IMG/VR virus record: IMGVR_UViG_3300032287_003113
Coordinates: 155,880-219,879 of that record
Reading direction: 5' to 3' (one strand)
Length of the DNA stretch: 64,000 bases
Within the stretch, counting starts at the first letter, position 1. The number at the start of each line of letters is the position of its first letter. The notes under the pieces were generated by a model. It was not told the DNA's origin and did not search any database. It worked only from the letters and a program-made list of their open reading frames with translations. This document shows, piece by piece, positions 39,918-59,592 of the stretch. The position numbers were made by a program, and so were the translations under genes.

Positions 39918-39923
39918 TATTTA
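39918..39923 (-). promoter_or_regulatory. Late-type promoter motif TAAATA for the queD leader
   Basis: ATAAATA overlapping the upstream stop, 86 nt before the queD ATG. Confidence 0.5.
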
Positions 39924-42177: not shown

Positions 42178-42183
42178 TATTTA
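42178..42183 (-). promoter_or_regulatory. Late-type promoter motif TAAATA
   Basis: Overlaps the upstream stop, about 47 nt before the folE ATG. Confidence 0.45.
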
Positions 42184-45322: not shown

Positions 45323-46318
45323 TTACGGATAGGTAAGCGATCGTAGATACCACTTATAAGCTGAGTCTATAATAGTACTTATGTCGCTGTATTCGGCAGT
45401 CCAATTTAACCATTCGTGTGCTCGGTCTACCTGTGCCACCAACTCTGCTGGATCTCCTAGTCTAGGAGCAGATACAACAGTACGGAAATCGGTGTCGTAG
45501 TGTTGTTTGACATAGTTGACAATTTCTTGATTGCTGATACCACCACCTGTGCCAAGATTGATCTGCTGTGCACCAACCCATCCATGAGCTTCGCCGGCGC
45601 GATCAGCGGCCATCACATGTGCCTGTGCTAGATCCCATACGTGTATGTAGTCTCTGACGCAAGTACCATCACGTGTTTTATAATCTGTGCCGTTTAATCC
45701 AAATTCTTCTTTACGCAACATAGATTCTAACACTCGTGCCACAATATGTGTGGCATTGGGCTCTTGGCCAAGGTCGTAGTTGAAAGGTTCAGCACCGGCC
45801 GCATTGAAAAATCTAAAACATACGCTTGGGATAGCATGAGCCAAGTAATAGTCTTTTAATATGCGTTCACAAGTGGCTTTGGTATTGCCATACGGACTGA
45901 TTGGATCGACACGATGACCTTCAGGAATAGGCAAACGTTCAGGCTCGCCGTACACACTGGCACTTGAACTAAACAAGATCAACGGACGTTTGGGCAAAGT
46001 TTTTACCACGTCCAAGAACTTTACAAATTTTACCACATTGTTGTCCCAGTACTCGCCGGGATTTGTCATGCTAGGGCCAACAAGACTGGTACCAGCACAA
46101 TGTACAACAACGTCAGGGTTGGCATGTATTAACACACTCAACGCACCATCGCTGACAAAGTCTCCGATAAAATACCCGTCAATGTCTCGGAGTGTGTGTT
46201 CACGTCGGACTTGATCCACTATAGTAACGTGGTAGCCGTGTTGTTTGAATGCCCGTGCCACGTGACTACCAATGTAGCCACACCCACCGGTTACAACAAC
46301 TCGTTTCGTGCTAGTCAT
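45323..46318 (-). CDS. galE: UDP-glucose 4-epimerase-like SDR
   Basis: TGGCGYIGSH, SSSASVYG, YGNTK, RFFNAAGA, DGTCVRDYIHV. Confidence 0.85.
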   Translation of the reverse strand: MTSTKRVVVTGGCGYIGSHVARAFKQHGYHVTIVDQVRREHTLRDIDGYFIGDFVSDGALSVLIHANPDVVVHCAGTSLVGPSMTNPGEYWDNNVVKFVKFLDVVKTLPKRPLILFSSSASVYGEPERLPIPEGHRVDPISPYGNTKATCERILKDYYLAHAIPSVCFRFFNAAGAEPFNYDLGQEPNATHIVARVLESMLRKEEFGLNGTDYKTRDGTCVRDYIHVWDLAQAHVMAADRAGEAHGWVGAQQINLGTGGGISNQEIVNYVKQHYDTDFRTVVSAPRLGDPAELVAQVDRAHEWLNWTAEYSDISTIIDSAYKWYLRSLTYP

Positions 46319-46831: not shown

Positions 46832-46991
46832 GGATAAGATCTCCTGTTACGGCATTGACCTTCATACCGGATTCGTTAATATAATAAGGTTGGCACATTT
46901 TAGTGCCATCCCATCGTTGTCCGCACCAGCACTCACCTTCTGCATTAATGATGCAATTGCCTGAACCGCAACAGCGTGGATCAGTCATCAT
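46815..46991 (-). CDS. Small Cys-rich protein
   Basis: RCCGSGNC...CWC...MC; GGAG SD before ATG 46991. Confidence 0.55.
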   Translation of the reverse strand: MMTDPRCCGSGNCIINAEGECWCGQRWDGTKMCQPYYINESGMKVNAVTGDLIHDQKI

Positions 46992-47658
46992 TACGCCCTC
47001 CAAACAACTGCAACAGGCTGATAAAAATATTGATAAAGTTTAGGTATAGGCTAAGTGCTCCTAACACTTCTTCGCGACCAGTATCACTATCATGTGACAC
47101 TATTTGGCGAATATTTTGTGTGTCGTATGCAGTTAGTCCCAAAAACACAACAATAGCAATAGCACTGATGACCATTTGCAACACTGAGCTGCCAACAAAG
47201 ATATTGACAATGCTGGCAATCACAATGGCAATCAAGCCCACAAACATGAATGATCCTATACTGGTCAAATCTTTTTTGGTAAAGTAACCATAAATGCTCA
47301 TGGTGCCAAACAGCACAGCGCCACCCATAAAGGCTGTAAAGATACTGCCCATGGAATAGATCACAAAGATTGTGGCAAAGCTCAGGCCCATAAGAGCACT
47401 GAACGCATACAAGAATAATTGTAGTCCAGTCTTGCTAAATCTTTCAGACGCAAATGTCATTGCTAAAATGCACACCAACGGAGCAAAAATAACAATCCAT
47501 TTTGTTAAACCTGTAAAAAAGAATCGCACCAGCTCTGGACTGGATCCTACAAAATAGCTCACAAACATACTGATAATCACAGCAAGACTCATGTGACCAT
47601 ACACACGACCCATTGCTTCATTAATTCCTGCGGCACTACGGTATACTGCTGTATTCAT
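46981..47658 (-). CDS. Bax inhibitor-1 / YccA family membrane protein
   Basis: 7 hydrophobic segments; YGYFTKKDL, GLTAYDTQNI, ALSLYLNFINIF. Confidence 0.85.
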   Translation of the reverse strand: MNTAVYRSAAGINEAMGRVYGHMSLAVIISMFVSYFVGSSPELVRFFFTGLTKWIVIFAPLVCILAMTFASERFSKTGLQLFLYAFSALMGLSFATIFVIYSMGSIFTAFMGGAVLFGTMSIYGYFTKKDLTSIGSFMFVGLIAIVIASIVNIFVGSSVLQMVISAIAIVVFLGLTAYDTQNIRQIVSHDSDTGREEVLGALSLYLNFINIFISLLQLFGGRNDD

Positions 47659-47671
47659 ACGTTCTCCTCGA

Positions 47672-48232
47672 TTATTCTTCTACAAAATCAATCATATTAC
47701 CATCTGCATCGGCACAGATAATACGAGTATTGCCTTCATCGTCTGATACTTCCAATGGTCCCCAGACCCAAACCTCAGTTTCGTCCAAATACCACTTGTC
47801 ATCATCTTCTAATGAGTAAGCACCTTCTTCGCTGATGAATTCTTCTAAGCGTTCCGCTTCGTCCTCATCGTCGATACCTTCGATTTCAATATCGCCCCAA
47901 CAGCCGCCGTCAAACATTTCAACAAGTTCAGTTGATTCAATGTTGTCACCAAAGCAGGAGTTTAAGTCAACGCTGTCTAAATCAGCACTACCTCCTGGGC
48001 AGTTGGTAAAGCTAAATTGCGGAAACTCTCCGTCATTGGTTTCTACACGGTATTCACACGAGCGGAATCCGTCCTTGACAACAACGCGACCAGCGCCATC
48101 GTTTTGCACATAGTATTCGTGTTGTTCACAAGACTTTTTATAGTAGGTCCTAACAGTCCACCAGCGTGATTTGGATTCTGTGGCTGGTTCTGCTACTGCT
48201 ACATCTTCGTCGGGTCCATAGGGCCAAGCCAT
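47672..48232 (-). CDS. Hypothetical acidic protein
   Basis: 186 aa, very D/E-rich. Confidence 0.7.
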   Translation of the reverse strand: MAWPYGPDEDVAVAEPATESKSRWWTVRTYYKKSCEQHEYYVQNDGAGRVVVKDGFRSCEYRVETNDGEFPQFSFTNCPGGSADLDSVDLNSCFGDNIESTELVEMFDGGCWGDIEIEGIDDEDEAERLEEFISEEGAYSLEDDDKWYLDETEVWVWGPLEVSDDEGNTRIICADADGNMIDFVEE

Positions 48233-49425
48233 TATGCTGTCTCCTCTTCAGTTACAGGAAATGCTTTAACGATCCTGTTCATCGACACCTCCGGATCCCA
48301 TTCTCTACAATATTTTGCACGGTTGGCACGACCTTGCTTAGTGTCAGGATCATAATCGATCCACGTAAACTCTGTGCCATCACACTCAGGGCAATGACTG
48401 TTGTATTCTTCATCTTCACGGCGGTCATCACTGCTGCCTACCCAGCCACACTTTTTATTGTCGCAGATCAGGCTGGGTGGCTCTGGTGGTTGATTGACCC
48501 ATGACGTGGTGTCCCAATTATAACCTGACCAAGACTCTACGCCTGACTCGGGTTTAAACTTACCGTATTCCCACTCGCCGAACTCTGTGCCGTTCCAATA
48601 CAACGACCCACTGGTTGTGCCAAAGTTTTTCCATACTGCATTGTAGTATCCAGGAATAGTAGGTTTAACTTTCTTAAACTTAAATGTCTCAGACCGTTCC
48701 CAAGTACTCGGACTTGTGCCGTATTCTGGATGACCCCAATCTTTTTCTTCAGGTTCATACTTCTCCCAACCACCGTTGTCGTCGGTGATCCGTGCCATGG
48801 TAAAGTCTGAACTCTTACCATCGGTGCTGCCACCAAAGTTATCAATGTCTTCACCGTTATATGTTAGACCAGTAACAATATCTTCGCCATCGAACTCTTC
48901 GTAGTGCAGTTCCAGTTTGGTGATATCAAACGGTTCAGTAAGTTCGATCTCGCCTTCAAAGAAGGTGCCTTTTTCATTGCTAGTTCCAACAAATACGATC
49001 TCGCCCTTCTTGCGGCTTCCAATCCAAACTTCGTCGTCGCAACACCACTCTGGGCTGTCTTCGGATGCACCATCACAGTCATCAAATGACTTTTGAAACA
49101 CAGTTTCGCCCGTTTCATCTTCAATCTGAATTGTACCAGCATCGCGACTTACACCATTGGTGTGTCCCATATCATCGCACTCGTACCAGGATCCTGGTGG
49201 GAATGGCAACAGGTCTTCGTCTAGATCCATGTCTTCACAGGCATCATAGTTCCAGGCGATGTCACTGAGATCAACTTGCTTATTGTTACAATAATCCCAG
49301 ACTTCCTGGGTGGTTGTGCCCATAACACGTTCGCCACCGTAGCCCCACATGCTAACCTTATAGGTGCGTGGTGTAAACTTAAGAACAGCTACTAGTTCTT
49401 CTGCTGTAATATCTTTGGTTGTCAT
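48232..49425 (-). CDS. Hypothetical acidic protein with C-terminal zinc ribbon
   Basis: CDNKKCGW...HCPECDG; D/E/W-rich; alternative start 49443. Confidence 0.7.
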   Translation of the reverse strand: MTTKDITAEELVAVLKFTPRTYKVSMWGYGGERVMGTTTQEVWDYCNNKQVDLSDIAWNYDACEDMDLDEDLLPFPPGSWYECDDMGHTNGVSRDAGTIQIEDETGETVFQKSFDDCDGASEDSPEWCCDDEVWIGSRKKGEIVFVGTSNEKGTFFEGEIELTEPFDITKLELHYEEFDGEDIVTGLTYNGEDIDNFGGSTDGKSSDFTMARITDDNGGWEKYEPEEKDWGHPEYGTSPSTWERSETFKFKKVKPTIPGYYNAVWKNFGTTSGSLYWNGTEFGEWEYGKFKPESGVESWSGYNWDTTSWVNQPPEPPSLICDNKKCGWVGSSDDRREDEEYNSHCPECDGTEFTWIDYDPDTKQGRANRAKYCREWDPEVSMNRIVKAFPVTEEETA

Positions 49426-49426
49426 T

Positions 49427-50605
49427 TTAGTATTTGCTTTCATGAGTGTGTTTACGATAATCAGTGCTCATACGGCGCCACTGCTCTCCTTTACCTTCTA
49501 AAATATCTACAATGCGATCAATACAACCGTCGGTCCAATCACTAATACGTCCTTGGTTAGGATGGGGATCAGCCAACAAATTGACCAGTTTGGTTTCGGC
49601 ATCATCTAACGACCAAGGAATGTAAAGTCGTTCAGGATCGTTAGCAAAAGTTTCAGGGAAACTACGATAAGCAGGATAAAGCACGTTGGCTCCCAGAGTG
49701 TCTGCTTCTGAAACGGTGTTTGATACCCAGTCTTGCAGAGCACAATTAAACAACACACGAGTATCGTTAAGTAGATGATAGTAATCATTTTTTTCCAAAT
49801 CCTCATATACTGTTAGCCAACCGCGAGCCTGTAGGTCTCTAGTACGAGCCATGTAGCTGTCATTGTTTGACTTTAGTTTAGCACCACTGAAAATAGCAAA
49901 CTCCACTGGAAAGTTGTTGTGATTACGATGCCATTGTTCAATTAAATCCATAAAGAAGTCTGGTTGCTTTTCCTGATCCCAACGTGCTGCAAATCCCACG
50001 CGATATGCACGATCCTGGAATGGTTTTAGTTCGCCCTCGATGCGACCACGCACTTCCGATTTGCCAAATGCCAAGCCCGAAATGTTATAGATGTTGCCTT
50101 CCCAACCGGCCACCTTCATGTGCATGACCATTTCTTCATTTGATGCTAGAATAATGTCCGCAAAACTATCCACCATTTTTTCATAAAGCCCCATCCACTT
50201 CTGCATACCCCACACATGAACGAAATCATCAGGGTCAATACTTTGTGCAAGGCAACGAACGGCAATGCGAGGACGATGAGCAGGATCGATTTGATCCATA
50301 ATATAAGGTAAGCTCTCGATACCGGGTTGAAACATGTCTTCAAAATAGATAACATCTTCATTTGTAACTTCTCCCTGTTTCATCTTGCGTACAAGATTCA
50401 TTAGTTGGCTCATACCAAAGTAAGTACGGCCATGTGCATCTAGCACTTGTCCTGTGACAATGGCTTGATCATTGCTGAGTGTTTCACCTGTAACAAGTTC
50501 GTACGTGATGCCACGACGTTTAAACACAGATTCATTCCAGTCTTGTAACTGTAATGTGTATCTTGCTTTGTAGGGCTCTAGGCCCATGTACCATAGTTTA
50601 CGCAT
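49427..50605 (-). CDS. GT-B (GT4-like) glycosyltransferase
   Basis: FAARWDQEKQPDFF, YYHLL..RVLFNCALQDWVSNTVSEA..G..VLYP..RSFPE; start ATG 50605. Confidence 0.7.
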   Translation of the reverse strand: MRKLWYMGLEPYKARYTLQLQDWNESVFKRRGITYELVTGETLSNDQAIVTGQVLDAHGRTYFGMSQLMNLVRKMKQGEVTNEDVIYFEDMFQPGIESLPYIMDQIDPAHRPRIAVRCLAQSIDPDDFVHVWGMQKWMGLYEKMVDSFADIILASNEEMVMHMKVAGWEGNIYNISGLAFGKSEVRGRIEGELKPFQDRAYRVGFAARWDQEKQPDFFMDLIEQWHRNHNNFPVEFAIFSGAKLKSNNDSYMARTRDLQARGWLTVYEDLEKNDYYHLLNDTRVLFNCALQDWVSNTVSEADTLGANVLYPAYRSFPETFANDPERLYIPWSLDDAETKLVNLLADPHPNQGRISDWTDGCIDRIVDILEGKGEQWRRMSTDYRKHTHESKY

Positions 50606-50619
50606 CTTATAAAGCCTCA

Positions 50620-50880
50620 TTAGTCTCTGGGTTTCCAATTCGTATCACGTGGTTTAAACGTGGTACGATCACGCTTGGGAGTACGCCACTGGTCCCATGG
50701 TTCACGCCCACGTACCATTTTCATGTATTCACCGTAGGGTGTGCGTTCGTTGTAAAGATTTTTCTCATCAAACGGATAACCATAGTCTCGACAAAAACGC
50801 TCATAGCGTTCTAGGTCTTCAAAGATAGCGACCACTTCGGGTTTGAAACGAAGATACTTCTTTAGCCATTCTTGGGCCAT
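50620..50880 (-). CDS. Hypothetical protein
   Basis: AGGAG SD. Confidence 0.7.
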   Translation of the reverse strand: MAQEWLKKYLRFKPEVVAIFEDLERYERFCRDYGYPFDEKNLYNERTPYGEYMKMVRGREPWDQWRTPKRDRTTFKPRDTNWKPRD

Positions 50881-50891
50881 GTTACTACTCC

Positions 50892-51341
50892 TTAGATTAC
50901 AATTGATTGGGAAGGGCGAGTGAGGTTATAATGAATCAAGCAACCGTTCTCGCCATCTTCGGCCACTTGAATTGAAATATTACGATTGGGATATCGATCT
51001 GCAATCTGTATGTAAAGATCGTCAGCGATCATTTCACACGATTTGAAATCCAGTTCTAAAACGGTATTCTGACCGTTATACAGCGACTCGAGCCATCGTT
51101 TGAACTGGATGAACTCGATGTCCCGGTCATTGTGGAACACATCGATTGACACCCGGAAATGAAATATATGGCGATGAGGATTAGCAAGGAACGCGACATC
51201 ATACTCTCCTGCTGTATTTAGCCGGGGATCAGTGGCCGCCGCTGGGTAGCAATGGATACCTTCTTTGCGGAAGGTGACCCAGATTCTGCGCCGGGCAGCT
51301 GTTTTAACTCTTTCAATTACTGCTCTTTGTTCTTGATTCAT
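50892..51341 (-). CDS. QueD paralog, DpdL-like (putative 7-carboxy-7-deazaguanine decarboxylase)
   Basis: LANPHRHIF matches the LxxxHRHxF signature recalled for DpdL; also DRDIEFI, SCEM, V.EDGENG. Confidence 0.6.
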   Translation of the reverse strand: MNQEQRAVIERVKTAARRRIWVTFRKEGIHCYPAAATDPRLNTAGEYDVAFLANPHRHIFHFRVSIDVFHNDRDIEFIQFKRWLESLYNGQNTVLELDFKSCEMIADDLYIQIADRYPNRNISIQVAEDGENGCLIHYNLTRPSQSIVI

Positions 51342-51342
51342 T

Positions 51343-52443
51343 TTATGCCTTGAGCATGTTAATAAGATTAGGGAAAGTTTTTGTAAAATCTAAATTTCTG
51401 CGTTTATCTATTGTGTTTAACGAGTATACAACATTGTCTATATTTTTGTCAAATGGTTTGGTAAGAAATTCTGCACAATTATGTAAACTGTTGCCAAATG
51501 TTGTGTTTGGATTATATCTATTTAGATCGCTGATTAAATCACCTAAAATTTTATCACCAAAATTTCTAGCGTCCAAATATTTTGGTTGTGTCAAGTAATG
51601 TACTGCTGTGCGATCAATATCTACGCCCAAATCAATAAGATATTCCCCAGTTTCAACAATGTTGGTAGAGAGCAAGAAATAATTCATTGTTACACCAATT
51701 TTCTCCTGGGGCCATTGTTGAATCAATTGTCGAAGGTTCGTTTCAAACTCCGACCATACTCCTGGATGCCTGATATACTCAAATTGAGCACCTGTGGCTT
51801 CAACACTGATTTCCCATTGCACATTGTTAAACTGTTTTATTTTAGAATAAATTCCAGTTTTTAAATTTGAAAGATTAGTGGTGATGCGTACCAAGCAATC
51901 AGGATTGGCCGCATATAATCGATCCAACAGTTCGCCATTTTCTTTAATCATCAACGGTTCGCCGCCGGCCAAGTATACTTCTTGAAGCCCCGCCAGTTTA
52001 TCGTGTGTGTAATCTTTCAATTGATCAAATGTGGAACGATCGGCATTGACAGTTTGTCCCATTTCAGCCGCCCACAAACTGCTAAAGTATGGACCACAAT
52101 AAACACAGGCATAGTTACAGACGTTTGACCAGCGTAGATCCAGTTGTGTCAGTTTATGCGTACCATCGTAATCAATGTCAACGTCCTTGTGTAATTTGAG
52201 CTGGTATGCTCGATTACTAAACTCAGGATCTACAGTTTCTCTTTGCTCGCATAGCTGACAGCTTTTGGGCCAGTGACCTGATTTTAAACTGTTTCTTATT
52301 TGTTGATTTTGTGTGTTGTCTAATATTACAGCAATTGGTGAAGATTTTAAGTTGCCCAGGGTTTCTTGGCTCATGGCACAATTTCTAACAGAACCATCGG
52401 GATTAACAGCGACGCCAGTCCACGGAAGCGGACAAGCGATCAT
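51343..52443 (-). CDS. Radical SAM protein with N-terminal twitch-like domain
   Basis: CPLPW..NC..CQLC; core CNYACVYC-GPYFSSLW; AGGEP; start ATG 52443 (ATGA). Confidence 0.85.
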   Translation of the reverse strand: MIACPLPWTGVAVNPDGSVRNCAMSQETLGNLKSSPIAVILDNTQNQQIRNSLKSGHWPKSCQLCEQRETVDPEFSNRAYQLKLHKDVDIDYDGTHKLTQLDLRWSNVCNYACVYCGPYFSSLWAAEMGQTVNADRSTFDQLKDYTHDKLAGLQEVYLAGGEPLMIKENGELLDRLYAANPDCLVRITTNLSNLKTGIYSKIKQFNNVQWEISVEATGAQFEYIRHPGVWSEFETNLRQLIQQWPQEKIGVTMNYFLLSTNIVETGEYLIDLGVDIDRTAVHYLTQPKYLDARNFGDKILGDLISDLNRYNPNTTFGNSLHNCAEFLTKPFDKNIDNVVYSLNTIDKRRNLDFTKTFPNLINMLKA

Positions 52444-52955
52444 TTTATAACTTCGTCTTGTGTGTATTTGGACCAATCCGTAAACTTAGTACGATCCTTT
52501 AAGTCATGTAACTGGTGACACCATACTCCGGGATTGGTTGCTGCAAAGTCTTTGTCATCCAGCTTTATTGTGGCGTTGTATCCCAAAAGTTGCAGATATG
52601 GTAGTTTAACACTGATCATTGGGATGAAATTGTTGTACTCGATCAAACAGCCCTGGGCTAGACCTTCTGCACTAGACACATCCAAATCCAAAGTACACAA
52701 TAGACCTCGTTGTAAACATGAGGTGATCATGCCTTCCCATTCACGCCAAGTATCGCCATCGTCGACGTCAGGATTGGGAAAACTTTGGTTGGCACCAAAA
52801 TAAACATGGTTGCAATTATTGTCCATGACCATATTGATAATAACGCCGGCGTCTTGTACACCAACCACAAATAAAGTTTTATGTCCAAATGCCGGGCTAT
52901 GCTCTACTTCCCGGCCAACAAAGAAATTTACTTGTTCGTGTCCTGCTCTGTTCAT
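52440..52955 (-). CDS. Uncharacterised protein adjacent to the DpdA-like gene
   Basis: G.EVE...G.KTLFVVG, HVYFGAN, NPGVWC; ATGA-coupled to the transglycosylase. Confidence 0.7.
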   Translation of the reverse strand: MNRAGHEQVNFFVGREVEHSPAFGHKTLFVVGVQDAGVIINMVMDNNCNHVYFGANQSFPNPDVDDGDTWREWEGMITSCLQRGLLCTLDLDVSSAEGLAQGCLIEYNNFIPMISVKLPYLQLLGYNATIKLDDKDFAATNPGVWCHQLHDLKDRTKFTDWSKYTQDEVIK

Positions 52956-54514
52956 TCTGCCTCCAGTGCGTCTAGTTTAGTTTGATCAAATTCTTGTTCT
53001 GTTGTTTCTTCTACAATTTCTACATCATCTTCAAAATAAAACAATTTACTAAAATTGGCACTACCGTTAACAGCTTTCTTGCCTTTGAATCCTCTAGTAC
53101 CAACAATTTCACACCAATACCCGGTATCTCCTTTATACATATCAATGATCTCCATCGATGTTGCTTTATCTGGGGCAGCAAAGATTGCTTCTACGATGTC
53201 TTCAAAATATTCACCACCCGGGCCTGAGCTACGCATCATGGCAGGATGAGCACCGGCATCAAATCTACGATTGGCTTCTTGTACCGCTGTCAAATGCATC
53301 CATACATTATGACCCATTAACAATGCGTAACTAAAACTATCCCATGACGTTTTGCCTTCTTTGCCATTCTTGTTTACATCGCCTGGTTTGTAGTAGCAAA
53401 TGTCTTTCATTTTAAACAAGTTACTAAGTGGACTGTCTTCCCAACGTGGATACTTGCCATCCGCTACCACTCCGTCACTCCACTTGCGTGTGTCTGTTGC
53501 GTACTTTTTGTCATCTGCACTAGGAGCCATCCTGTATGACCACTTGCCGTTGTCGGGAAACACATTTTCAAAGTATACCTGTCCGTTGGCAGTTGCCAAG
53601 AATGGACTAGCACAATCAAAGCTGATAGTGAAACTAGGATTTACATATTTTCTAACGTTTCGTTGTATTACAGTTAACAGTACTGCCCACTCTAGTTTGC
53701 TTGTGCCCAAGAAGTGCATCCAATCGTGAACACCTTCTTGTAACAAGTTATCATGACGTAGAGTAACTAAACGTCTGAGAATCAACTCTACGTCACACAT
53801 GTTTTGTCCACCCATGGCCCATCCGTTAAAGTGTGTGTCTGGATGTTGCACAGGATCACAATAGTGTTTCATGGTTTCGTACCAATCGTCGGCCTCAATG
53901 TGGTTGGCACCTTGTAATACATTTAAGATCTTAACACCACCGTTCTTGATACCTTTACGATTGGTCATAAAGTAATCATTGTTGTATTTGGTAGCATCAA
54001 CAGCTTCCTGGTGCGTACTGATACCACATTTCTTACCTGCTTCTTTATCTAGTGCAACCCAGGTTGGAATATCAAGGGTCATACCGTAGTCAGCAATGCC
54101 ATCAAGCCAAGCCAAAACCTGTTCTCGTTTTTTCTGTGCTTTGGGACATCCTGAATTGGCCTTCCAATCGCCTTCCCATAATCCTTTGGCAATCTGGAAT
54201 CCACCAGAGTCGCCTAAGATCAGTGTGTTGGGATCACGATTGCGTACCATATCCTCTGACCAGTCCTGTTTGGCAAGGTCGAGGTTTGCGTGGCCACCGG
54301 AGTAAAGAGACCACTTGTAAGGAAACAACGCTTTTTGATCATTCAACCAGTTGAGTTGTTCCATGTCTGTTATGCCTTGCGGAAAACGTGTAGGATCCAC
54401 ATAAGGTCCGGCAGGATCACGTTGCTTGCCTATGAACGTGGCATAGAAACCACTGATGGCTGGAAGGAACACAGCATAGTCTGATTGTTTGGCAGTTAAG
54501 TTATCTTGGCTCAT
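52952..54514 (-). CDS. dpdA: TGT-fold guanine transglycosylase, DpdA-like
   Basis: LGDSGGFQ, TLDIP, LNVLQG, GWAMGG, MHFLG, ISFDCASP, C-terminal HN; no CxCxxC Zn site; linked to folE/queD/queE; start ATG 54514. Confidence 0.7.
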   Translation of the reverse strand: MSQDNLTAKQSDYAVFLPAISGFYATFIGKQRDPAGPYVDPTRFPQGITDMEQLNWLNDQKALFPYKWSLYSGGHANLDLAKQDWSEDMVRNRDPNTLILGDSGGFQIAKGLWEGDWKANSGCPKAQKKREQVLAWLDGIADYGMTLDIPTWVALDKEAGKKCGISTHQEAVDATKYNNDYFMTNRKGIKNGGVKILNVLQGANHIEADDWYETMKHYCDPVQHPDTHFNGWAMGGQNMCDVELILRRLVTLRHDNLLQEGVHDWMHFLGTSKLEWAVLLTVIQRNVRKYVNPSFTISFDCASPFLATANGQVYFENVFPDNGKWSYRMAPSADDKKYATDTRKWSDGVVADGKYPRWEDSPLSNLFKMKDICYYKPGDVNKNGKEGKTSWDSFSYALLMGHNVWMHLTAVQEANRRFDAGAHPAMMRSSGPGGEYFEDIVEAIFAAPDKATSMEIIDMYKGDTGYWCEIVGTRGFKGKKAVNGSANFSKLFYFEDDVEIVEETTEQEFDQTKLDALEAE

Positions 54515-55139
54515 AGTAAAATTGTGTTTGATTGATAAAATTGTAGTCCTCTTGGAATCTAGCAACTACTTTGGCTTTTAATGTAAAATCGTCCAGTATC
54601 CTATTTTTTATAAATTTAGTTACGACTTGTTGATCGTAATGATCTTCGGAAACATTTGACTCAACCGGGGCTACGGTGAAAGGTTGTGAGATGCAAGCAC
54701 CCATATTGTCAATCACACACCGATCTAGTTTAAAATATGTAACAGGTACGCCTGGCAATAGTTGGTCGAGTTGTTTGATAAATCTAATCTGCGGTGTGGT
54801 ATGATCATCAACGATCAAGGTTTCAAACAACAGCCGTTCAGATAAATTATTATAGTGTTCAATAAAGTGATCACTTCCATACCCCGGTCCCAATATCCAA
54901 CTGCTAATATATGTACCAACTCCACTGACCCAACGATCAACAGGGTCTTTTAGCACAACCATTGCGTGTTCAATTCGATCACTGTCGTCACCTAATGTAT
55001 GATAGTGCCATCCATTGGCCAGTAGTGTGTTAGACAGATACGTACTGGCGTTTTTAGGAATATTTAGATAAAAGTTTTTTTTATCTGGACTACGCAATCC
55101 GCCATTTTCATGATAACCATGTCTAACTGCTTCACGCAT
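54501..55139 (-). CDS. Sulfotransferase-like protein (PAPS-dependent fold)
   Basis: NIPKNASTYL (5'-PSB-like), KDPVDRWVS (3'-PB-like), DHTTPQ. Confidence 0.6.
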   Translation of the reverse strand: MREAVRHGYHENGGLRSPDKKNFYLNIPKNASTYLSNTLLANGWHYHTLGDDSDRIEHAMVVLKDPVDRWVSGVGTYISSWILGPGYGSDHFIEHYNNLSERLLFETLIVDDHTTPQIRFIKQLDQLLPGVPVTYFKLDRCVIDNMGACISQPFTVAPVESNVSEDHYDQQVVTKFIKNRILDDFTLKAKVVARFQEDYNFINQTQFYYEPR

Positions 55140-55873
55140 TACTTGGTTTGTGCTGGCAACATGTATTTGTAAACAGCCAAACCTGAATCCACAGTGATTT
55201 CAGCAACACCTTCATCACTGATCTTGAATGTTTTATCTCCGGGCAAGCTCAAAATACTATTGACAACTGCCACAGGCCAATTCAATTGTTTACTTAAACT
55301 GCCCGGTGTTGCGGCAAATGTAAATGATCCTGCATGGCTGCTGGCTTCGCCAAAGAAAAACTTCAGTTCGCCATTTTCTGTTTTGCTTGAAAATGTGGTA
55401 GCATCTGAGTGTGCCATTGATTGAAACTTCAACTTCTGAATGCTCAGTGCTGTGGGAACAACTTCAACACCCCACTTGACTGGTTTCATCTTAACGTTCT
55501 TGAGTTGATCATTAATGACAGCAGTGGTCATAAATCGATATGAATTTTTAAAGTCTCCGCCTTTGTTTTCAAAGTTGATGCTGGCAGGAACATCTGTGCC
55601 GTCCGAATCTTTCTGTGTTGCTACAGCAAGTTTGGCACCTTCTTTGTATTCTGGAATGTTAAGAATAGTGTTGAGTCTATCCAAGTTGGGCATACCAAAC
55701 ACGCCAACAAACTCGGCAATGGGTGCTTTGAATTCTGCATTTAGCACTACTGTTTTGGTAGCTTGGTCAAAGGCATTGATAGCGGTGCCTTCTGCGGTGC
55801 CGGTAACTTTGAGCATACTAATAACGCCTAAGCCATAAGTGTGTTGTACAATATCTTTTAAATGATCAAACAT
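55139..55873 (-). CDS. Putative DNA polymerase sliding clamp (gp45-like)
   Basis: 244 aa, beta-rich repeating pattern, near the family B polymerase; no diagnostic motif. Confidence 0.45.
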   Translation of the reverse strand: MFDHLKDIVQHTYGLGVISMLKVTGTAEGTAINAFDQATKTVVLNAEFKAPIAEFVGVFGMPNLDRLNTILNIPEYKEGAKLAVATQKDSDGTDVPASINFENKGGDFKNSYRFMTTAVINDQLKNVKMKPVKWGVEVVPTALSIQKLKFQSMAHSDATTFSSKTENGELKFFFGEASSHAGSFTFAATPGSLSKQLNWPVAVVNSILSLPGDKTFKISDEGVAEITVDSGLAVYKYMLPAQTK

Positions 55874-55909
55874 TTTTTATTCTCCGTAAGTGTAGTAATT
55901 GTATAGTAG

Positions 55910-55915
55910 TATTTA
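55910..55915 (-). promoter_or_regulatory. Late-type promoter motif TAAATA
   Basis: Intergenic, about 37 nt upstream of the 55873 start. Confidence 0.5.
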
Positions 55916-55922
55916 GAAAAAG

Positions 55923-56873
55923 TCAATGGTCTCGTCTTTTTATTTCGCCTAATACCTGATGTGCTTTGACCGTTTCCAGTGTGCCAGGCCGTTTGAGTTC
56001 GATCCAACTGACTGTGGTTCCTTGACCATGTACGTCTTTGATGTAATATACCTCAAAACCCAAACTCTCACACATGGGTATCAACATGCTTTTTGGCATA
56101 TAACTCATCCAAAAACTTTCTGCATAGTTGGCACCGTCGACTAAGTCGCCGTTGTTATAACTAAACATAAAAATGCCACCCGGACGTAACAGTCCCTTGA
56201 CCGATTTTAAATATTCTTTTATAGTATCGAGACTGCGATAGTTTAGGAAATTCCAACAAAATACAAATCCAAATTGTCCCTGAGGCAATGCATCAAAATT
56301 GGTATCTTTGACAAGATATGGTCTTAGTCTGCGTTGATACTCATCTGGAAACTGACTGACTGTAGATTGTAAAAAATCTCTGTAGTGATCAGTGACATAT
56401 AACGGATCAGCAGCCACAATGTGTTTGGTCCACTCACCATCCCGGCATCCAATTTCTAGTGCTGGATATTTCCAATTGGTATTTAATTGTATGCGATTAT
56501 GAATTTCTGTTTGTAAAGATTCAGATAACTCCATCACCCGTAATTTTCGTATGTTGCTCACTGCCTCTTCTTCGACACGCAATTCTAATTCGTAGTTATT
56601 GGTAAACAAGTGAGCCGCTTCCACGTGTATCTGTTGATTTATTTTGTCGATGATGAGATCGAATCGAGACTGACTAAATTGTAAATCCTGGTGTAGTCTA
56701 GTAAAATCTCCAGTCAATTGATGGATTTCTGTTTGTACATCTGCCAATGGCGTTTCGTTGGCAATAGCACCAATGCGATTTTCTAAACTGTTAATACCCA
56801 AGGTAATGTCGTGAGTCGTGTACTCTGATTTTAACAGCTCTCGGATTCGAACAAGTTCGGTTAATTTTTTCAT
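55923..56873 (-). CDS. Class I SAM-dependent methyltransferase with N-terminal coiled coil
   Basis: ALEIGCRDG, FGFVFCWNFLNY, LLRPGGIFMFSY. Confidence 0.75.
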   Translation of the reverse strand: MKKLTELVRIRELLKSEYTTHDITLGINSLENRIGAIANETPLADVQTEIHQLTGDFTRLHQDLQFSQSRFDLIIDKINQQIHVEAAHLFTNNYELELRVEEEAVSNIRKLRVMELSESLQTEIHNRIQLNTNWKYPALEIGCRDGEWTKHIVAADPLYVTDHYRDFLQSTVSQFPDEYQRRLRPYLVKDTNFDALPQGQFGFVFCWNFLNYRSLDTIKEYLKSVKGLLRPGGIFMFSYNNGDLVDGANYAESFWMSYMPKSMLIPMCESLGFEVYYIKDVHGQGTTVSWIELKRPGTLETVKAHQVLGEIKRRDH

Positions 56874-59533
56874 TATTCAAAACTAAACAAATCATCAAAG
56901 GTTGTTTTAATATCTGTTGATTCAGCAATACGCCACTCTAGCACACCCAACAAGTTCTCTACCTTTTGATCCACAATGGTTGATTCCATTGTGCTATCAT
57001 CGAATGGCAAGTCTTTGAACCACTGCGGTATATGAGTTTCGTCTGTGGGATAGCCCACAGACGTATATCCCACTGGATTGTCTTTGAGTTTACACACGAT
57101 GGTTTTCATACCGTCTACGATGGTTGTTGAATAGTTGTCGCCATGCATACGCTTTAGGTTGTTCCAGTTCATTGCGGCTCTAACGTGTCCGGGCATGTTG
57201 GCTTTGCCCAGACGTGCTTCTTCGGCCGCATATTTGGTCAGGTTGTTCACACGTTTGGGTGTGCCTTTTTCCCAGGCTGGTCTGGTAGCAAACAATAACT
57301 TGAATTCTTTGACTTTTTCAATAACAGCTTCTCGGCCGGCACCTGTTAACACATCCATGAGTAGCTCACTCAAGAAGTCTTGTACTACCTTGGGTGTATC
57401 TGATCGCTTGAGATCCAAGCCCATGGCCTTCATCTTGCCTGGCTTGCCGTGTGTGTCTAGTCGCACACCTTCCATGTCAAAGATCAATACACCATAACGT
57501 TTCTTTTTGATAAACAAGCCCTTACTTGCAATAAGTTCACGACCGGCTGCAATAATGGCACCCATCTCTCTAGGACAATGACAAGCACGTTCCATGAATG
57601 CTGGGAAACTGGCATTTACTGAGTCGGCAATGGTATCATATAACTGCACACAGATTTCTCTGCTCCATTCCATGCGACCTGCGGCTACTTCCTCTTTGAT
57701 TTGCGGCCAGGCTGAGAAATAGACCGAGTCCGTGTCGCCGTAGATGATACTTGCGCCAACGTGGTCATACTGGCCGGTAATAGCTTCATTGACGTGTGCG
57801 TCCATGTGCTTTGCAATGATCCGGCCCGTAAGCGTCGTAGATTGGCCAATCCTTTGATCAAAGAAGCGGCAACCCGGGTTAAGGATCGCCCCGTAAAGTG
57901 AGTTAAGGTTAATTTTTTTAACGAGTTGCCGCTTGTCCCAGAACGCTTGATCTTCCTTAGATGTTGCGGTTTTCTTCTTAGCTTGCATTTCCTTACGTTC
58001 AGCATACCATCTCTCCAATAGGCCAGGGATAATACCCTTGACATCATATTTAAATATTGTGCCATTGGCACTCAAAGTCCATGGCTGACGACTGTCAAAT
58101 ATCAAGCGCCATACATCTGCGGCACTCATTACATCCGAACCACCCTGTTCCCAGTCTACAGTAATCTCAGTGCCTGGTTCCATGTTCATCACTGCTTGAT
58201 ACTCTAGGGTACCAAACATGTTTTCCCAGGCATCAGCAAAGCTCGATCCACTCGCCAGCTTTTCTTGGATGTAGTGGTCGGTCATTACAGTTCTTAACTG
58301 ACCAACGACCGTTTCTGGTCCCATGTTAAGAGCACGGATCGCTGACGGGTAGAGACTGTTAAGGTCGATCGCTCCGATGTATTCGTGCATGCCTTTTTTG
58401 GGGTAAGCAACGTAGGCACCTGCCGCTTGTGTGTCACCTTGATCATCTCTGCTTCTCCTGTTAGGTACTACTAGCCCACGGCTGTGAGCCTCATTGATAA
58501 TGGCTTGTTCGGTAACTGCCACAGCACCCATGGTGGTTTGCAGTAGCACAGTATTGTCATGTGCTAGTTCATTAGCCAAGTCTAAGAAGCGTAGTTTCTT
58601 ATCTAACTTGGCAAGAATCATTGTGTCTTGGCGATTGTAGTCAATGAACTTGGGAAAGTCTTTGTTGTACAGTTGATCCAAGGTGCCTTCGTACTGTGTC
58701 TTGCGGTCACCCAGTTCGTATTCGGCAATGGCATCCAGGCTATAACTGTGACGTTCTTCATAAGTGTATTTGCGATACAGTTGCATGTAGTCTAAGTGAA
58801 CACGACCCAGCAAGTCAAAGGTCAAGTTCTCTGCACCAAAGCGTTCAAACACACGTTGCTTGGGCAGTTGCCCCCACAAGCATAATCTACGTGTGTCGTC
58901 CTTGCTGAGAACTCTAGTGATACGCATTGTGGTATAAGGAATATCGAAGCCCTCACTGTTCCATCCCGACAAGATATCTGCATCTTCAATCAGGTCAAGG
59001 AATGTGTTGAGCATGTCCTCTTCTCGTTCAAACAAAAAACAGTTGTCATATTGAGCACAAATTTCTTCAGCAGTTTGCCAACTGTAACTCTTGGGCGGAA
59101 CCACCAGCGTGACCATTTTGTCCATCCAGTCCATGTAGACTGAGACAGCAGTGATAGCGTTAAAGGGATCTTCAGGTTTTGAATAGCCTCTAAGTGGATC
59201 AAAGTCCACCTCAATGTCAAAAAAGGCTGTTTGTAGTTTTGGCGAGTCTACGCCTAGATAATTTTCTTCAAGACAACGGAAGATGGGATTGATATCTGAC
59301 TCCCATAGTCGCTTGTTACCGTTGATGCGTTGCTCTTTGTGGAACTCTTTGCCGTTTTTTGTGGCAAAGCGTGTGACAGGCGTGTCAAAGATTGTGCGGA
59401 ATTTTCCTCTGGGGTCATCGTAGTAGAACACATAGTTGGCCGGATACTCAGTATAAATTCGTTCTCCGTTCACACGTTCTACCACGTGTATGCGATCTTT
59501 GTCGCGATCAAACAATGCATCTATATAACTCAT
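56873..59533 (-). CDS. polB: Family B DNA polymerase with 3'-5' exonuclease
   Basis: FDIEVD, GWNSEGFDIPY, DLNSLYPS, KINLNSLYG, YGDTDS, KKRY; start ATG 59533 (GGAG SD). Confidence 0.97.
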   Translation of the reverse strand: MSYIDALFDRDKDRIHVVERVNGERIYTEYPANYVFYYDDPRGKFRTIFDTPVTRFATKNGKEFHKEQRINGNKRLWESDINPIFRCLEENYLGVDSPKLQTAFFDIEVDFDPLRGYSKPEDPFNAITAVSVYMDWMDKMVTLVVPPKSYSWQTAEEICAQYDNCFLFEREEDMLNTFLDLIEDADILSGWNSEGFDIPYTTMRITRVLSKDDTRRLCLWGQLPKQRVFERFGAENLTFDLLGRVHLDYMQLYRKYTYEERHSYSLDAIAEYELGDRKTQYEGTLDQLYNKDFPKFIDYNRQDTMILAKLDKKLRFLDLANELAHDNTVLLQTTMGAVAVTEQAIINEAHSRGLVVPNRRSRDDQGDTQAAGAYVAYPKKGMHEYIGAIDLNSLYPSAIRALNMGPETVVGQLRTVMTDHYIQEKLASGSSFADAWENMFGTLEYQAVMNMEPGTEITVDWEQGGSDVMSAADVWRLIFDSRQPWTLSANGTIFKYDVKGIIPGLLERWYAERKEMQAKKKTATSKEDQAFWDKRQLVKKINLNSLYGAILNPGCRFFDQRIGQSTTLTGRIIAKHMDAHVNEAITGQYDHVGASIIYGDTDSVYFSAWPQIKEEVAAGRMEWSREICVQLYDTIADSVNASFPAFMERACHCPREMGAIIAAGRELIASKGLFIKKKRYGVLIFDMEGVRLDTHGKPGKMKAMGLDLKRSDTPKVVQDFLSELLMDVLTGAGREAVIEKVKEFKLLFATRPAWEKGTPKRVNNLTKYAAEEARLGKANMPGHVRAAMNWNNLKRMHGDNYSTTIVDGMKTIVCKLKDNPVGYTSVGYPTDETHIPQWFKDLPFDDSTMESTIVDQKVENLLGVLEWRIAESTDIKTTFDDLFSFE

Positions 59534-59540
59534 AACTCTC

Positions 59541-59592
59541 CAATGTGTGCCGCTTTGAGCCGACACTTGCTCTACATGCTGATTAAGTCAGC
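59541..59592 (-). promoter_or_regulatory. Two hairpins in the polymerase 5' leader (translational operator candidate)
   Basis: GCUGA/UCAGC hairpin and a CAAGUGU.../...ACACAUUG hairpin ending at the GGAG SD. Confidence 0.4.

Follow-up and report, generated by a model that had tools for sequence, protein, structure and literature searches.

A gene run next to the DNA polymerase of an uncultured jumbo phage encodes a divergent guanine-swapping enzyme (DpdA-like) that probably rides the sliding clamp, and its conserved sugar-transferase partner suggests that the inserted 7-deazaguanine is further glycosylated, a modification which has not been described for phage DNA. The run lies in a window of 64,000 nucleotides (positions 155,880 to 219,879 of IMG/VR record IMGVR_UViG_3300032287_003113). 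A sequence-only reading of this window listed a methyltransferase, clamp, sulfotransferase, DpdA-like protein, unknown 171-aa protein, twitch radical SAM protein, DpdL-like protein, small ORF and GT4-like glycosyltransferase (GT), and suggested that the inserted base is hypermodified and that insertion is coupled to replication. We show herein that the run is real: all nine ORFs exist on the minus strand, are packed with 1-14 nt overlaps or gaps under 55 nt, and were named essentially correctly. The interpretation is supported only in part, since the linkage of the GT to the deazaguanine genes holds and the clamp idea gains independent support, while the sulfotransferase and the twitch radical SAM protein appear to be optional add-ons at best. 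The downstream part of the module (GalE, mini-DegT, FolE, PRTase, QueD and QueE) lies outside 49427-56873 and was missed.

Gene content of the module

The features, all on the minus strand, are as follows.

56873-59566 (-), family B DNA polymerase (PolB, 897 aa), which heads the run; PF00136/PF03104 and phrog_262, E 1.7e-193.
56876-56899 (-), PolB C-terminal tail FDDLFSFE, a presumed clamp-binding peptide by analogy to the T4/RB69 gp43 tail; conserved as ..F(D/T)(D/S)LF(S/D)(F/W)E at the very end of PolB in 65 related loci.
55923-56873 (-), class-I SAM-dependent methyltransferase (316 aa); PF08242 (E 3.8e-9), PF13489, PF13649 and PF08241.
55139-55873 (-), probable sliding clamp (244 aa); phrog_12062.
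54501-55139 (-), sulfotransferase-like protein (212 aa), an optional member.
52952-54514 (-), divergent DpdA/TGT-fold (predicted) transglycosylase (520 aa from the ATG; the ORF reaches 54565).
53030-53053 (-), PolB-like motif FSKLFYFE in the predicted disordered C-terminal tail of DpdA.
52440-52955 (-), conserved 171-aa protein without assigned function, a core partner of DpdA.
51343-52476 (-), N-terminal-twitch radical SAM protein, an optional member; NF033640, 242 bits against a cut-off of 170.
50892-51341 (-), DpdL (QueD-like; proposed 7-carboxy-7-deazaguanine decarboxylase).
50620-50880 (-), conserved 86-aa ORF with a basic C-terminus; no family match in Pfam or PHROG profile searches.
49427-50620 (-), GT-B/GT4-like glycosyltransferase (403-aa protein; 397 aa from the ATG).
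45323-46318 (-), UDP-glucose 4-epimerase GalE, which likely supplies the sugar donor; TIGR01179, 289.6 bits against a cut-off of 262.3.
42181-42762 (-), shortened DegT-like protein (mini-DegT, 193 aa); partial PF01041 and NF008687 matches.
41295-42131 (-), GTP cyclohydrolase I (FolE); PF01227, E 1.1e-38.
39921-40466 (-), xanthine/guanine phosphoribosyltransferase-like protein (PRTase); PF00156 and NF006613, with homologues in the Que clusters of BUCT-ZZ01 and PA5oct.
39383-39832 (-), QueD (6-carboxytetrahydropterin synthase); PF01242, E 1.5e-14, motif CHLLHGY.
38277-39137 (-), QueE-like radical SAM protein (7-carboxy-7-deazaguanine synthase); TIGR03365 and other QueE models match the N-terminal part, and it is homologous to the annotated QueE of BUCT-ZZ01 and PA5oct.

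The 520-aa protein misses every Pfam threshold. Nonetheless, its AF2 model (pLDDT 90.8) has a TGT/DpdA fold, the top 50 Foldseek PDB hits all being tRNA-guanine transglycosylase (E about 4e-8), and D102, S103 and G105 (of DSGGFQ), P150, H267 and D300 are invariant among 57 diverse homologues. Profile comparison with hhalign gave 96.5% to ACP17 gp123 and 70% to phiST DpdA3. No canonical TGT or DpdA was found elsewhere in the record. The DpdL assignment rests on the motif LANPHRHIF, which matches LxxxHRHxF (PMC10516641), and on tblastn matches to ACP17 gp125 (52%, 6e-37) and phiST CGPG_00067 (33%, 4e-9). The AF2 model of the GT (pLDDT 78) retrieved BshA, PimB', MshA, WcaL and ALG2 with Foldseek (E about 1e-10), and D297-x7-E305 is invariant.

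The window's sulfotransferase-like protein hits nothing in Pfam and has a weak phrog_3347 hit, but its PKxxSS and RDPxxR motifs are invariant (P28 and K29 of PKNAS; D65, P66 and R69 of RDPxxR), and nine of 19 homologues hit PF03567. The clamp assignment is less secure: homologues follow PolB in PA5oct, Phosso and Vibrio phage 2.275.O and are annotated as sliding clamp in Phosso and fEgEco12, yet hhalign to a T4-type gp45 was negative. The 171-aa protein has no Pfam, PDB or atlas match; its homologues are ACP17 gp122, directly upstream of its DpdA, and a PA5oct protein (HMM E 5.8e-44).

Conservation of the run and of the DpdA tail

In about 80 related contigs, the order PolB-MTase-clamp-DpdA-171aa-DpdL-86aa-GT-GalE-miniDegT-FolE is invariant, and the arrangement, which recurs in every related contig with enough flank, is not chance. 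Among loci with enough flank, the methyltransferase was present in 76/77 (though only about 30% identical in the more distant ones), the clamp in 78/78, the 171-aa protein in 61/61, DpdL in 51/51, the 86-aa ORF in 42/42, the GT, adjacent to the deazaguanine genes, in 37/37, GalE downstream of the GT in 34/34, and mini-DegT and FolE each in 31/33. These loci are one lineage, so their synteny is partly inherited. In contrast, the sulfotransferase was present in only 33/79 loci, and the twitch radical SAM protein was found in the slot downstream of DpdA in only 5/56, with copies as low as 30% identical. Neither was found in the other phage lineages, and the methyltransferase is conserved only within this lineage. 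The sulfotransferase, the twitch radical SAM protein and the methyltransferase are not supported as core tailoring.

The GT family also lies beside DpdL/DpdA in six unrelated cultured phage lineages, namely ACP17 (gp122-gp126), PA5oct (EST35_0316-0318), BUDD/X1, BCSR5, Phosso and BUCT-ZZ01, and PA5oct has an epimerase-like ORF next to its DpdL. Vibrio phage 2.275.O, on the contrary, has the same DpdA type with QueC, QueF and Gat, but neither DpdL nor the GT. This distribution supports a sugar-decorated deazaguanine, although the chemistry is inferred.

The PolB-like motif of DpdA lies within residues 474-506, where pLDDT is below 50. It is conserved across relatives, and the DpdA tail copies the C-terminal tail of PolB in six lineages, the motif co-varying between them (PolB end/DpdA tail): FDDLFSFE/FSKLFYFE in the window, FDSLFGW/FNSLFDV in PA5oct, NNTDLFDW/NNNDLFGW in Vibrio 2.275.O, SLDDLFE/TLDELFE in ACP17, SLESLFG/SLEELFG in BUDD, and STLDDFFS/ASLDSFFD in BUCT-ZZ01. 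A motif of this kind is 8-fold enriched in the last 45 residues of 57 diverse family members. Outside DpdA and PolB, the only other genome-wide hit is a DegT fold helix. Complex prediction of the clamp trimer with DpdA residues 461-520 gave only weak support, with a score of 0.54 against 0.00 for the best of 3 controls; that mark is reached by 58 of 80 solved complexes and 2 of 110 mismatched pairs, the runs agree in at least 35% of contacts, and the partner's pLDDT is at least 38. Together with the tail mimicry, this supports clamp-coupled insertion.

Relation to described systems

The closest systems differ from the module in several respects. The DpdA3/DpdL dDG system of Cellulophaga phage phiST (Cui et al. 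2023, PMC10516641) likewise has FolE-QueD-QueE without QueC, a DpdL with the LxxxHRHxF motif, and a distant TGT-fold transglycosylase next to the polymerase region. However, phiST DpdA3 is 259 aa and only weakly similar, no clamp-type tail has been described for it, and phiST has no GT, GalE, 171-aa partner, methyltransferase or sulfotransferase. The cluster of Acidovorax phage ACP17, a 156-kb myovirus, contains in one block the 171-aa homologue, a smaller DpdA (424 aa), the GT homologue, DpdL (52% identical) and QueE, but no methyltransferase, sulfotransferase or twitch radical SAM protein. The dpdA and dpdL genes of ACP17 and phiST alone gave no dDG in E. coli (PMC10516641), which is compatible with missing partners; the GT and the 171-aa partner of ACP17 are not named in the main text of that paper. 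Pseudomonas jumbo phage PA5oct has PolB, clamp homologue, DpdA homologue (36% identical), GT homologue, DpdL, epimerase-like ORF, PRTase-like ORF and QueE, in that order, with no sulfotransferase, methyltransferase or twitch radical SAM protein in the run. Its DNA resists G-containing restriction sites (PMC12191111), and Iyer et al. 2021 noted a deazaguanine synthesis and incorporation system (PMC7824862), but the papers examined do not give the nature of its modified G.

A phage DNA-modifying enzyme that binds the sliding clamp, and so acts concomitantly with replication, has a precedent in the T4 alpha-glucosyltransferase bound to gp45 (Sommer 2004; PMC13216743). There, the clamp-bound enzyme is the GT-B glucosyltransferase acting on hmC, whereas here the tail is on the base-exchanging transglycosylase, and in BUCT-ZZ01 also on a second GT. 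GT-B/GT4-type enzymes whose acceptor is a 7-deazaguanine derivative include HuiG of huimycin biosynthesis (GT4, PF13439) and the tRNA-queuosine mannosyltransferase QTMAN. Huimycin tailoring also pairs a GT with a class-I methyltransferase (10.64898/2026.04.15.718813), and a QTMAN cluster appeared among the language-model neighbours. Those enzymes act on a free secondary-metabolite base or on tRNA queuosine, not on DNA, and no specific sequence relationship to the GT of the window was shown.

Alternative readings and proposed mechanism

It remains possible, though we consider it less likely, that the DNA carries only plain 7-deazaguanine (dDG) or dCDG, and that the GT, GalE, mini-DegT, sulfotransferase, methyltransferase and radical SAM proteins are auxiliary or moron genes that act on host or phage glycans or small molecules and merely sit in the early/replication region. 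phiST, which has DpdL, and Vibrio phage VP1 carry plain dDG without any GT (PMC10516641; 10.1101/2025.10.29.685425), and four other DpdL phages show no GT by profile search; the GT is therefore not needed for dDG itself. Moreover, GTs, GalE and sugar aminotransferases are common auxiliary genes of aquatic phages, the window holds further sugar genes far from dpdA (a full DegT at 18328-19461 and an SDR at 19412-20359), proteins of the window's GT type carry no clamp tail, and the sulfotransferase and twitch radical SAM protein are variable. Such a reading does not readily account for the same GT family lying next to DpdL/DpdA in six unrelated lineages with otherwise different gene orders, for its absence where the pathway runs through QueC/QueF, or for the second GT in the BUCT-ZZ01 cluster, which carries the PolB-like tail.

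Two other readings appear unlikely. The modification might be made before replication, with the PRTase turning the (possibly glycosylated) deazaguanine base into a nucleotide that the polymerase incorporates, and the TGT-fold protein serving another role, such as repair or tRNA modification. A purine PRTase recurs inside the Que cluster in this window, BUCT-ZZ01 and PA5oct, a deazapurine PRTase exists in toyocamycin biosynthesis, and the ADG nucleoside was seen in cells infected with phage CP220 (cited in PMC10516641). However, the TGT-fold protein keeps the catalytic motifs, is the most conserved gene of the module, and carries a clamp-type tail, which fits action on DNA; no dGTP-excluding pyrophosphatase was noticed in the run, and the PRTase is equally well explained as salvage of the displaced guanine. 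Less likely still, the GT might target a different base, for example a hydroxymethylated pyrimidine as in T-even phages, given that GT-B enzymes glucosylate hmC in T4 and that the window has a ThyA-family gene at 20356-21267 and a dCMP-deaminase-like gene at 62286-63356. The ThyA homologue, however, scores like a normal thymidylate synthase (344 bits) and lies 29 kb away, and across lineages the GT co-occurs with DpdL, not with ThyA-like genes.

We favor, with no more than modest confidence, the view that the run is the core of a replication-linked 7-deazaguanine DNA-modification module. What the analysis establishes is the gene content: FolE, QueD and QueE are encoded downstream, no QueC is found in the 220 kb available (although the record is estimated at 51% complete, so QueC could lie in the missing part), a DpdL homologue and a protein of predicted TGT fold with the DSGGFQ catalytic motif are present, and a GT4-like GT-B glycosyltransferase and a GalE always accompany them. 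The mechanism, including base exchange, clamp binding and any glycosylation, sulfation or methylation of the base, is inferred. With FolE, QueD and QueE but no QueC found, 7-carboxy-7-deazaguanine and then 7-deazaguanine is the expected base. In this view, GTP is converted to 7-carboxy-7-deazaguanine, DpdL decarboxylates it to 7-deazaguanine (an activity that has never been demonstrated for DpdL; PMC10516641), and the DpdA-like enzyme swaps this base for guanine in phage DNA, the released guanine being recycled by the PRTase. The 171-aa and 86-aa proteins would be obligatory partners, the methyltransferase a lineage-specific extra, and the sulfotransferase and twitch radical SAM protein optional accessories. 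DpdA would act while held on the sliding clamp by a C-terminal peptide that copies the presumed clamp-binding tail of the polymerase, and insertion would therefore follow the fork closely. Although 7-deazaguanine has no obvious hydroxyl or amine handle at C7, which leaves the glycosylation site undefined, the GT, fed with UDP-galactose or UDP-glucose through GalE, would add a hexose to the deazaguanine, either on the free base or on DNA, and the product would be a sugar-bearing deazapurine.

Gene content of the run and its downstream module

The window is the last 64 kb of a 219,879-base IMG/VR virus record judged about 51% complete, and from about 36 kb to 64 kb nearly all genes lie on the minus strand. 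Nine ORFs directly downstream of a family-B DNA polymerase (PolB; 56873-59566) overlap by 1-14 nt or are separated by fewer than 55 nt. A sequence-only reading had described them as one tightly packed run, and this observation is confirmed. The nine ORFs are:

55923-56873, 316 aa, class-I SAM methyltransferase domain
55139-55873, 244 aa, putative sliding clamp (phrog_12062)
54501-55139, 212 aa, sulfotransferase-like protein
ATG at 54514, 520 aa, DpdA-like protein with a predicted TGT fold
171-aa protein without a family
51343-52476, 377 aa, N-terminal-twitch radical SAM protein
50892-51341, 149 aa, DpdL
86-aa ORF without a family
ATG at 50620, 397 aa, GT4-like glycosyltransferase (GT) with a predicted GT-B fold

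The rest of the module lies outside the region delimited by that reading:

45323-46318, GalE, above the equivalog cut-off
42181-42762, shortened DegT-like protein (mini-DegT)
41295-42131, FolE
39921-40466, xanthine/guanine phosphoribosyltransferase (PRTase)-like protein
39383-39832, QueD
38277-39137, QueE-like protein

The DpdA-like protein contains LGDSGGFQ, but neither it nor any of 57 diverse family members matched Pfam TGT (PF01702), DpdA (PF23859) or any other Pfam family, and a single-sequence search of PDB sequences found nothing. The family is large, with more than 7,400 proteins in the 90% collection and 912 clusters at 50% identity. Among the 57 members, S72, G74, D102, S103, G105, P150, H267 and D300 are invariant. 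A profile of the family found only tRNA-guanine transglycosylase in PDB sequences, at a marginal E of about 0.8, with its DSGGFQ, LDxP, LQG and GWAxGG motifs aligned to DSGGYQ, FDE, QQG and GYAVGG of TGT. An AlphaFold2 model built on the family alignment was confident (pLDDT 90.8, pTM 0.88), and its 50 best Foldseek matches in the PDB were all Z. mobilis TGT (E 4e-8 to 5e-7, probability 1.00). D300 lies in SFDCASPF, and its equivalence to the TGT nucleophile (D280) is our inference; where TGT has its CxCxxC...H zinc ligands, only one Cys and the HN of the SYxLLMxHN segment are seen. Profile comparison by hhalign linked the family to gp123 of phage ACP17 (96.5%), to a 416-aa protein of phage BUCT-ZZ01 (93.5%) and, only weakly, to phiST DpdA3 (CGPG_00065; 70%, E 4e-5 over 116 columns). 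We therefore treat this protein as a divergent, enlarged DpdA of the DpdA3 kind, which belongs to the TGT/DpdA superfamily by its predicted fold and motifs, but not to the Pfam-defined TGT or DpdA families.

DpdL carries LANPHRHIF, which fits the LxxxHRHxF signature given for DpdL by Cui et al. (PMC10516641) in place of the CxxxHGH of QueD, while the separate QueD has CHLLHGY. It hits the named DpdL of ACP17 (52%, 6e-37) and phiST (33%, 4e-9). FolE, QueD, QueE and DpdL occur together, as in the DpdA3 subfamily of Cui et al., and no QueC was found in the 220 kb of this record, which is only about 51% complete. By the scheme of Cui et al., this gene set predicts 7-carboxy-7-deazaguanine (CDG) and, with DpdL, 7-deazaguanine.

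The glycosyltransferase has no Pfam hit (Glycos_transf_1 or Glyco_trans_1_4), and PDB sequence searches gave nothing useful. Its language-model neighbours are viral clusters, some of which carry Glycos_transf_1 (PF00534). The AF2 model (pLDDT 78, pTM 0.80) matched GT-B enzymes by Foldseek, namely the GT4 enzymes BshA, PimB', MshA and glycogen synthase in the PDB, and WcaL, MshA, ALG2, BshA and PimA in AFDB Swiss-Prot, all at E about 1e-10 and TM about 0.6; UDP-GlcNAc 2-epimerases, which share the fold, also appeared. D297-x7-E305 (QDWVSNTVSEAD) occupies the position of the GT4 EX7E motif and is invariant in 31 homologues. It is a D-for-E variant, and this reading of the motif is ours. The GTs of all lineages share an N-terminal (L/I)E(P/S)xxxRYT signature.

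The sulfotransferase-like protein itself has no Pfam hit, and PDB searches were again uninformative. However, IPKNAS and RDPVDRW fit the 5'-PSB (PKxx[ST][ST]) and 3'-PB (RDPxxR..S) PAPS-binding motifs, P28, K29, D65, P66 and R69 are invariant in 19 homologues, and nine of these 19 match sulfotransferase family 2 (PF03567; best E 4.9e-5). The radical SAM protein scored 242.3 bits against the curated cut-off of 170 for NF033640, over residues 14-374. The 244-aa protein has no Pfam or PDB sequence match, a PDB profile search was empty, hhalign of its family against a T4-type gp45 was negative, and a collection search returned no names. Its homologues follow PolB in PA5oct, Phosso and Vibrio phage 2.275.O and also occur in GAP32- and 121Q-type jumbo phages, and two GenBank records call them sliding clamp. 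Its identity as a clamp rests on the annotation of other records and on its position after PolB. The 171-aa protein found no family in an atlas search (best 0.85, chance level), a collection search (5,611 unnamed homologues) or a PDB profile search, and the 177-aa 'glycosylase' of Phosso and the 143-aa ORF of BUDD, which occupy the same position, do not align with it convincingly. The 86-aa ORF likewise matched no family.

A 2OG-Fe(II) oxygenase (PF13759; 59618-60139, minus strand) lies directly upstream of PolB, and a 356-aa protein with a dCMP/cytidine deaminase domain (62286-63356, minus strand) lies further upstream. Directly after the GT, a 403-aa ORF (48232-49443, minus strand) without a family match has a C-terminal CPECDG zinc-ribbon-like motif and is present in only 6 of 80 related loci. 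Two membrane proteins unusual for a phage replication region were found, a Bax-inhibitor-1/YccA family protein (46981-47658, minus strand; E 4.7e-54) and a TauE/SafE sulfite-exporter family protein (36610-37572, minus strand), the latter being curious beside a sulfotransferase. A variable island (42835-45296), present in 2-6 of 84 loci, contains a viperin-like radical SAM protein (44268-45296; NF038283, 1.5e-14), a 120-aa ORF and, on the opposite strand, an AMP-binding (acyl-adenylate-forming) enzyme that lacks the usual N-terminal part (42835-43920). Between FolE and the PRTase, a 141-aa HhH-GPD/endonuclease III-like fragment (40873-41298, minus strand) is present in only 6 of 80 related loci. 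Since host END nucleases sense hypermodified DNA with inactive EndoIII domains (PMC12191111), this fragment might have a decoy or repair role.

Far from the dpdA run, a second sugar-nucleotide gene set (18328-21267, minus strand) comprises a full-length DegT sugar aminotransferase (377 aa, E 1e-77) and an SDR epimerase/dehydratase (315 aa), next to a full-scoring thymidylate synthase (303 aa, 344 bits). In addition, among the ORFs at 28612-29670 and 29667-30875 (both minus strand), a 352-aa protein combines an N-terminal P-loop/ABC-like segment with a GNAT acetyltransferase domain and sits next to a protein with a faint N6-DNA-methylase match. As Iyer et al. 2021 (PMC7824862) predicted that a GNAT+ABC-ATPase protein of some jumbo phages performs an uncharacterised acyl modification of a DNA base, this phage may carry a second DNA-modification system.

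Conservation in related loci and in independent lineages

To examine the conservation of the neighbourhood, the proteins of the window were mapped on 80 IMG/VR loci whose DpdA is 71-99% identical, and only loci with enough flank were counted.

Table. Presence of each gene in related loci with enough flank
PolB: 65/65
methyltransferase: 76/77
putative clamp: 78/78
171-aa protein: 61/61
DpdL: 51/51
86-aa ORF: 42/42
GT: 37/37
GalE: 34/34
mini-DegT: 31/33
FolE: 31/33
sulfotransferase: 33/79
twitch radical SAM: 5/56

The last two sit in variable slots, sometimes as copies only 25-33% identical. Because these loci are one lineage, the counts show a stable module rather than an independent association.

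Stronger evidence came from independent lineages. ACP17 has gp122 (171-aa homologue), gp123 (DpdA), gp124 (GT homologue), gp125 (DpdL) and gp126 (QueE). PA5oct has PolB, clamp, an 86-aa ORF, DpdA (36% identical), GT (hhalign 97%), DpdL, an epimerase-like ORF, a PRTase-like ORF and QueE. Xanthomonas BUDD has GT, a 437-aa 'queuine tRNA-ribosyltransferase', DpdL and QueE, while Burkholderia BCSR5 has DpdL, then the GT next to a 446-aa protein and QueE. Sinorhizobium phage Phosso has PolB, clamp, a 177-aa ORF, DpdL, GT, FolE and QueE, with its DpdA elsewhere, behind a second clamp paralogue. The T4-like cyanophage BUCT-ZZ01, a Synechococcus phage, has the GT (63% identical), DpdL, a DpdA-type 416-aa protein, a second GT, FolE, QueD, PRTase and QueE. 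Vibrio phage 2.275.O has the same DpdA type behind the same clamp, but uses QueC, QueF and Gat and has neither DpdL nor the GT.

Five phages, phiST, RHph_I1_18, Bakedbeans, Ahp1 and D479, have DpdL without a detectable GT. In the last four, a profile search found no homologue of the GT family (GT403a), nor, together with BCSR5, any match to the 520-aa type of DpdA; as the first look of this method is loose, absence is weak evidence. In Vibrio phage Bakedbeans, the DpdL domain is the C-terminal third of a 383-aa protein (gp176; 8254-9405, plus strand, of the Bakedbeans locus L090), whose N-terminal 255 residues are about the size of phiST DpdA3, so that it may be a DpdA-DpdL fusion. Thus, the GT is a frequent but not obligatory partner of DpdL, and goes with the larger DpdA proteins. 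The sequence-only reading had taken the GT and the sulfotransferase as candidate tailoring enzymes, and had named their lack of linkage to dpdA in other phages as part of what would count against this. This condition does not hold for the GT, but effectively does for the sulfotransferase.

PolB-like tails and the putative sliding clamp

PolB of this lineage ends with TTFDDLFSFE or NTFTSLFDFE, which resembles the clamp-binding C-terminal tail of T4/RB69 gp43. The DpdA model has a disordered tail (residues 474-506, pLDDT below 50) that contains FSKLFYFE, and relatives have QFNALFEFEE or MFDQLFEVEG at the same place in an otherwise variable stretch. In the whole 220-kb record, the pattern F..LF.[FVWYL][EDGW] occurs in three of 322 ORFs (0.67 hits expected anywhere), namely at the PolB end, in the DpdA tail and at the N-terminus of the mini-DegT. 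The third was a false lead, as it is the usual DegT helix (..FE.elA.y.G) and is not kept in relatives. The motif differs between lineages but matches within each.

Table. PolB C-terminus and DpdA tail in five phages; (end) marks the last residue of the protein
PA5oct: HFDSLFGW (end); SFNSLFDVD
Vibrio 2.275.O: NNTDLFDW (end); NNNDLFGW (end)
ACP17: SLDDLFE (end); TLDELFE (end)
BUDD: SLESLFG (end); SLEELFG (end)
BUCT-ZZ01: STLDDFFS (end); ASLDSFFD (end)

The correspondence is weak in Phosso (TFNDLFTF against IVEGLF, both terminal), and BCSR5 shows nothing. A [LM]F motif is 8-fold enriched in the last 45 residues of the 57 diverse family members. Complex prediction of three copies of the putative clamp with DpdA residues 461-520 gave only weak support, with a score of 0.54 against 0.00 for the best of 3 controls, a mark reached by 58 of 80 solved complexes and 2 of 110 mismatched pairs; the runs agreed in at least 35% of contacts, and the pLDDT of the partner was at least 38. 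The co-variation of the tails is the stronger argument, and clamp-coupled DNA modification has a precedent in T4 alpha-glucosyltransferase and gp45 (PMC13216743).

GT403a-type proteins have no clamp tail in any lineage. However, the second GT in the deazaguanine cluster of BUCT-ZZ01 (447 aa, PF13692, UTS52035.1; 14614-15957, minus strand, of the BUCT-ZZ01 locus L001) ends with SLEDFFND, which suggests a clamp-tethered DNA glycosyltransferase; it has no homologue in the genome of the window. Phosso has two paralogues of the clamp-like protein (9112-9921 and 8948-9706 of its loci L003 and L087, respectively). One follows PolB and precedes DpdL and the GT, and the other, annotated 'virion structural protein', lies immediately upstream of the DpdA homologue, next to primase and helicase. 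The PA5oct homologue was likewise detected in virions by mass spectrometry, according to its annotation.

Inferred mechanism and its implications

What the analysis itself establishes is the gene content, the motifs, the synteny and the folds, the latter as predicted by models, while the chemistry that follows, the exchange of the base and the binding to the clamp are inferred. In the mechanism that we consider most likely, GTP is converted to CDG by FolE, QueD and QueE, and CDG to 7-deazaguanine by DpdL, an activity that is itself only proposed in the literature (PMC10516641). DpdA would then exchange the base into DNA while bound to the clamp behind the polymerase, and the PRTase would salvage the displaced guanine. 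The GT would use UDP-Gal or UDP-Glc, balanced by GalE, to add a hexose to the deazaguanine, possibly at C7 as a C-glycoside or at N2 as in huimycin-type natural products, and either before or after insertion. The lack of a clamp tail in GT403a-type proteins leaves room for action on the free base, whereas the tailed second GT of BUCT-ZZ01 argues that at least one GT of such clusters works on DNA. The sulfotransferase, twitch radical SAM protein and methyltransferase may decorate further in some lineages, but nothing ties them to the base beyond position. The proposal of the sequence-only reading, a hypermodified deazaguanine whose insertion is coupled to replication, is supported in part.

DpdA subfamilies, DpdL and dDG have been described (PMC10516641), Iyer et al. 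noted a deazaguanine synthesis and incorporation system in PA5oct (PMC7824862), and PA5oct DNA behaves as G-modified (PMC12191111). No paper linking a glycosyltransferase or a sliding clamp to phage deazaguanine modification was found, in a literature search that was incomplete and did not extend to supplements. The analysis yields two predictions, a sugar-bearing deazaguanine and a clamp-tethered DpdA. It is possible, although we hold this only tentatively, that a widespread group of large phages, including abundant uncultured jumbo phages and the cultured phages PA5oct, ACP17, BUDD, BCSR5, Phosso and BUCT-ZZ01, writes a sugar-bearing 7-deazaguanine into its DNA at the replication fork. In this view, a clamp-tethered DpdA inserts the deazaguanine made by DpdL, a dedicated GT4-like enzyme with a phage GalE glycosylates it, and some lineages add sulfate or methyl groups. 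This would be the first glycosylated purine analogue in natural DNA and the first clamp-coupled base-exchange enzyme.

Known 7-deazaguanine DNA modifications are small, being cyano, amido, aminomethyl, methyl, formyl, carboxy or H at C7, and sugars on DNA have so far been seen only on pyrimidines. A conserved glycosyltransferase and GalE partnered with DpdA and DpdL would add sugars to that list. It may also explain two open observations, namely that expression of dpdA and dpdL of ACP17 and phiST alone gave no dDG in E. coli, and that the modified G of PA5oct is still unidentified. Hosts carry glycosylases and END nucleases that attack dDG-type DNA, so a further decoration would be a plausible counter-move. 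The polymerase-like tail on DpdA offers a simple, testable mechanism, like that of DNMT1/PCNA or T4 alpha-GT/gp45, for how some phages reach near-complete replacement of G. Finally, the DpdA family described here is invisible to Pfam despite its size, and deazaguanine modification in environmental jumbo phages is therefore probably under-counted.
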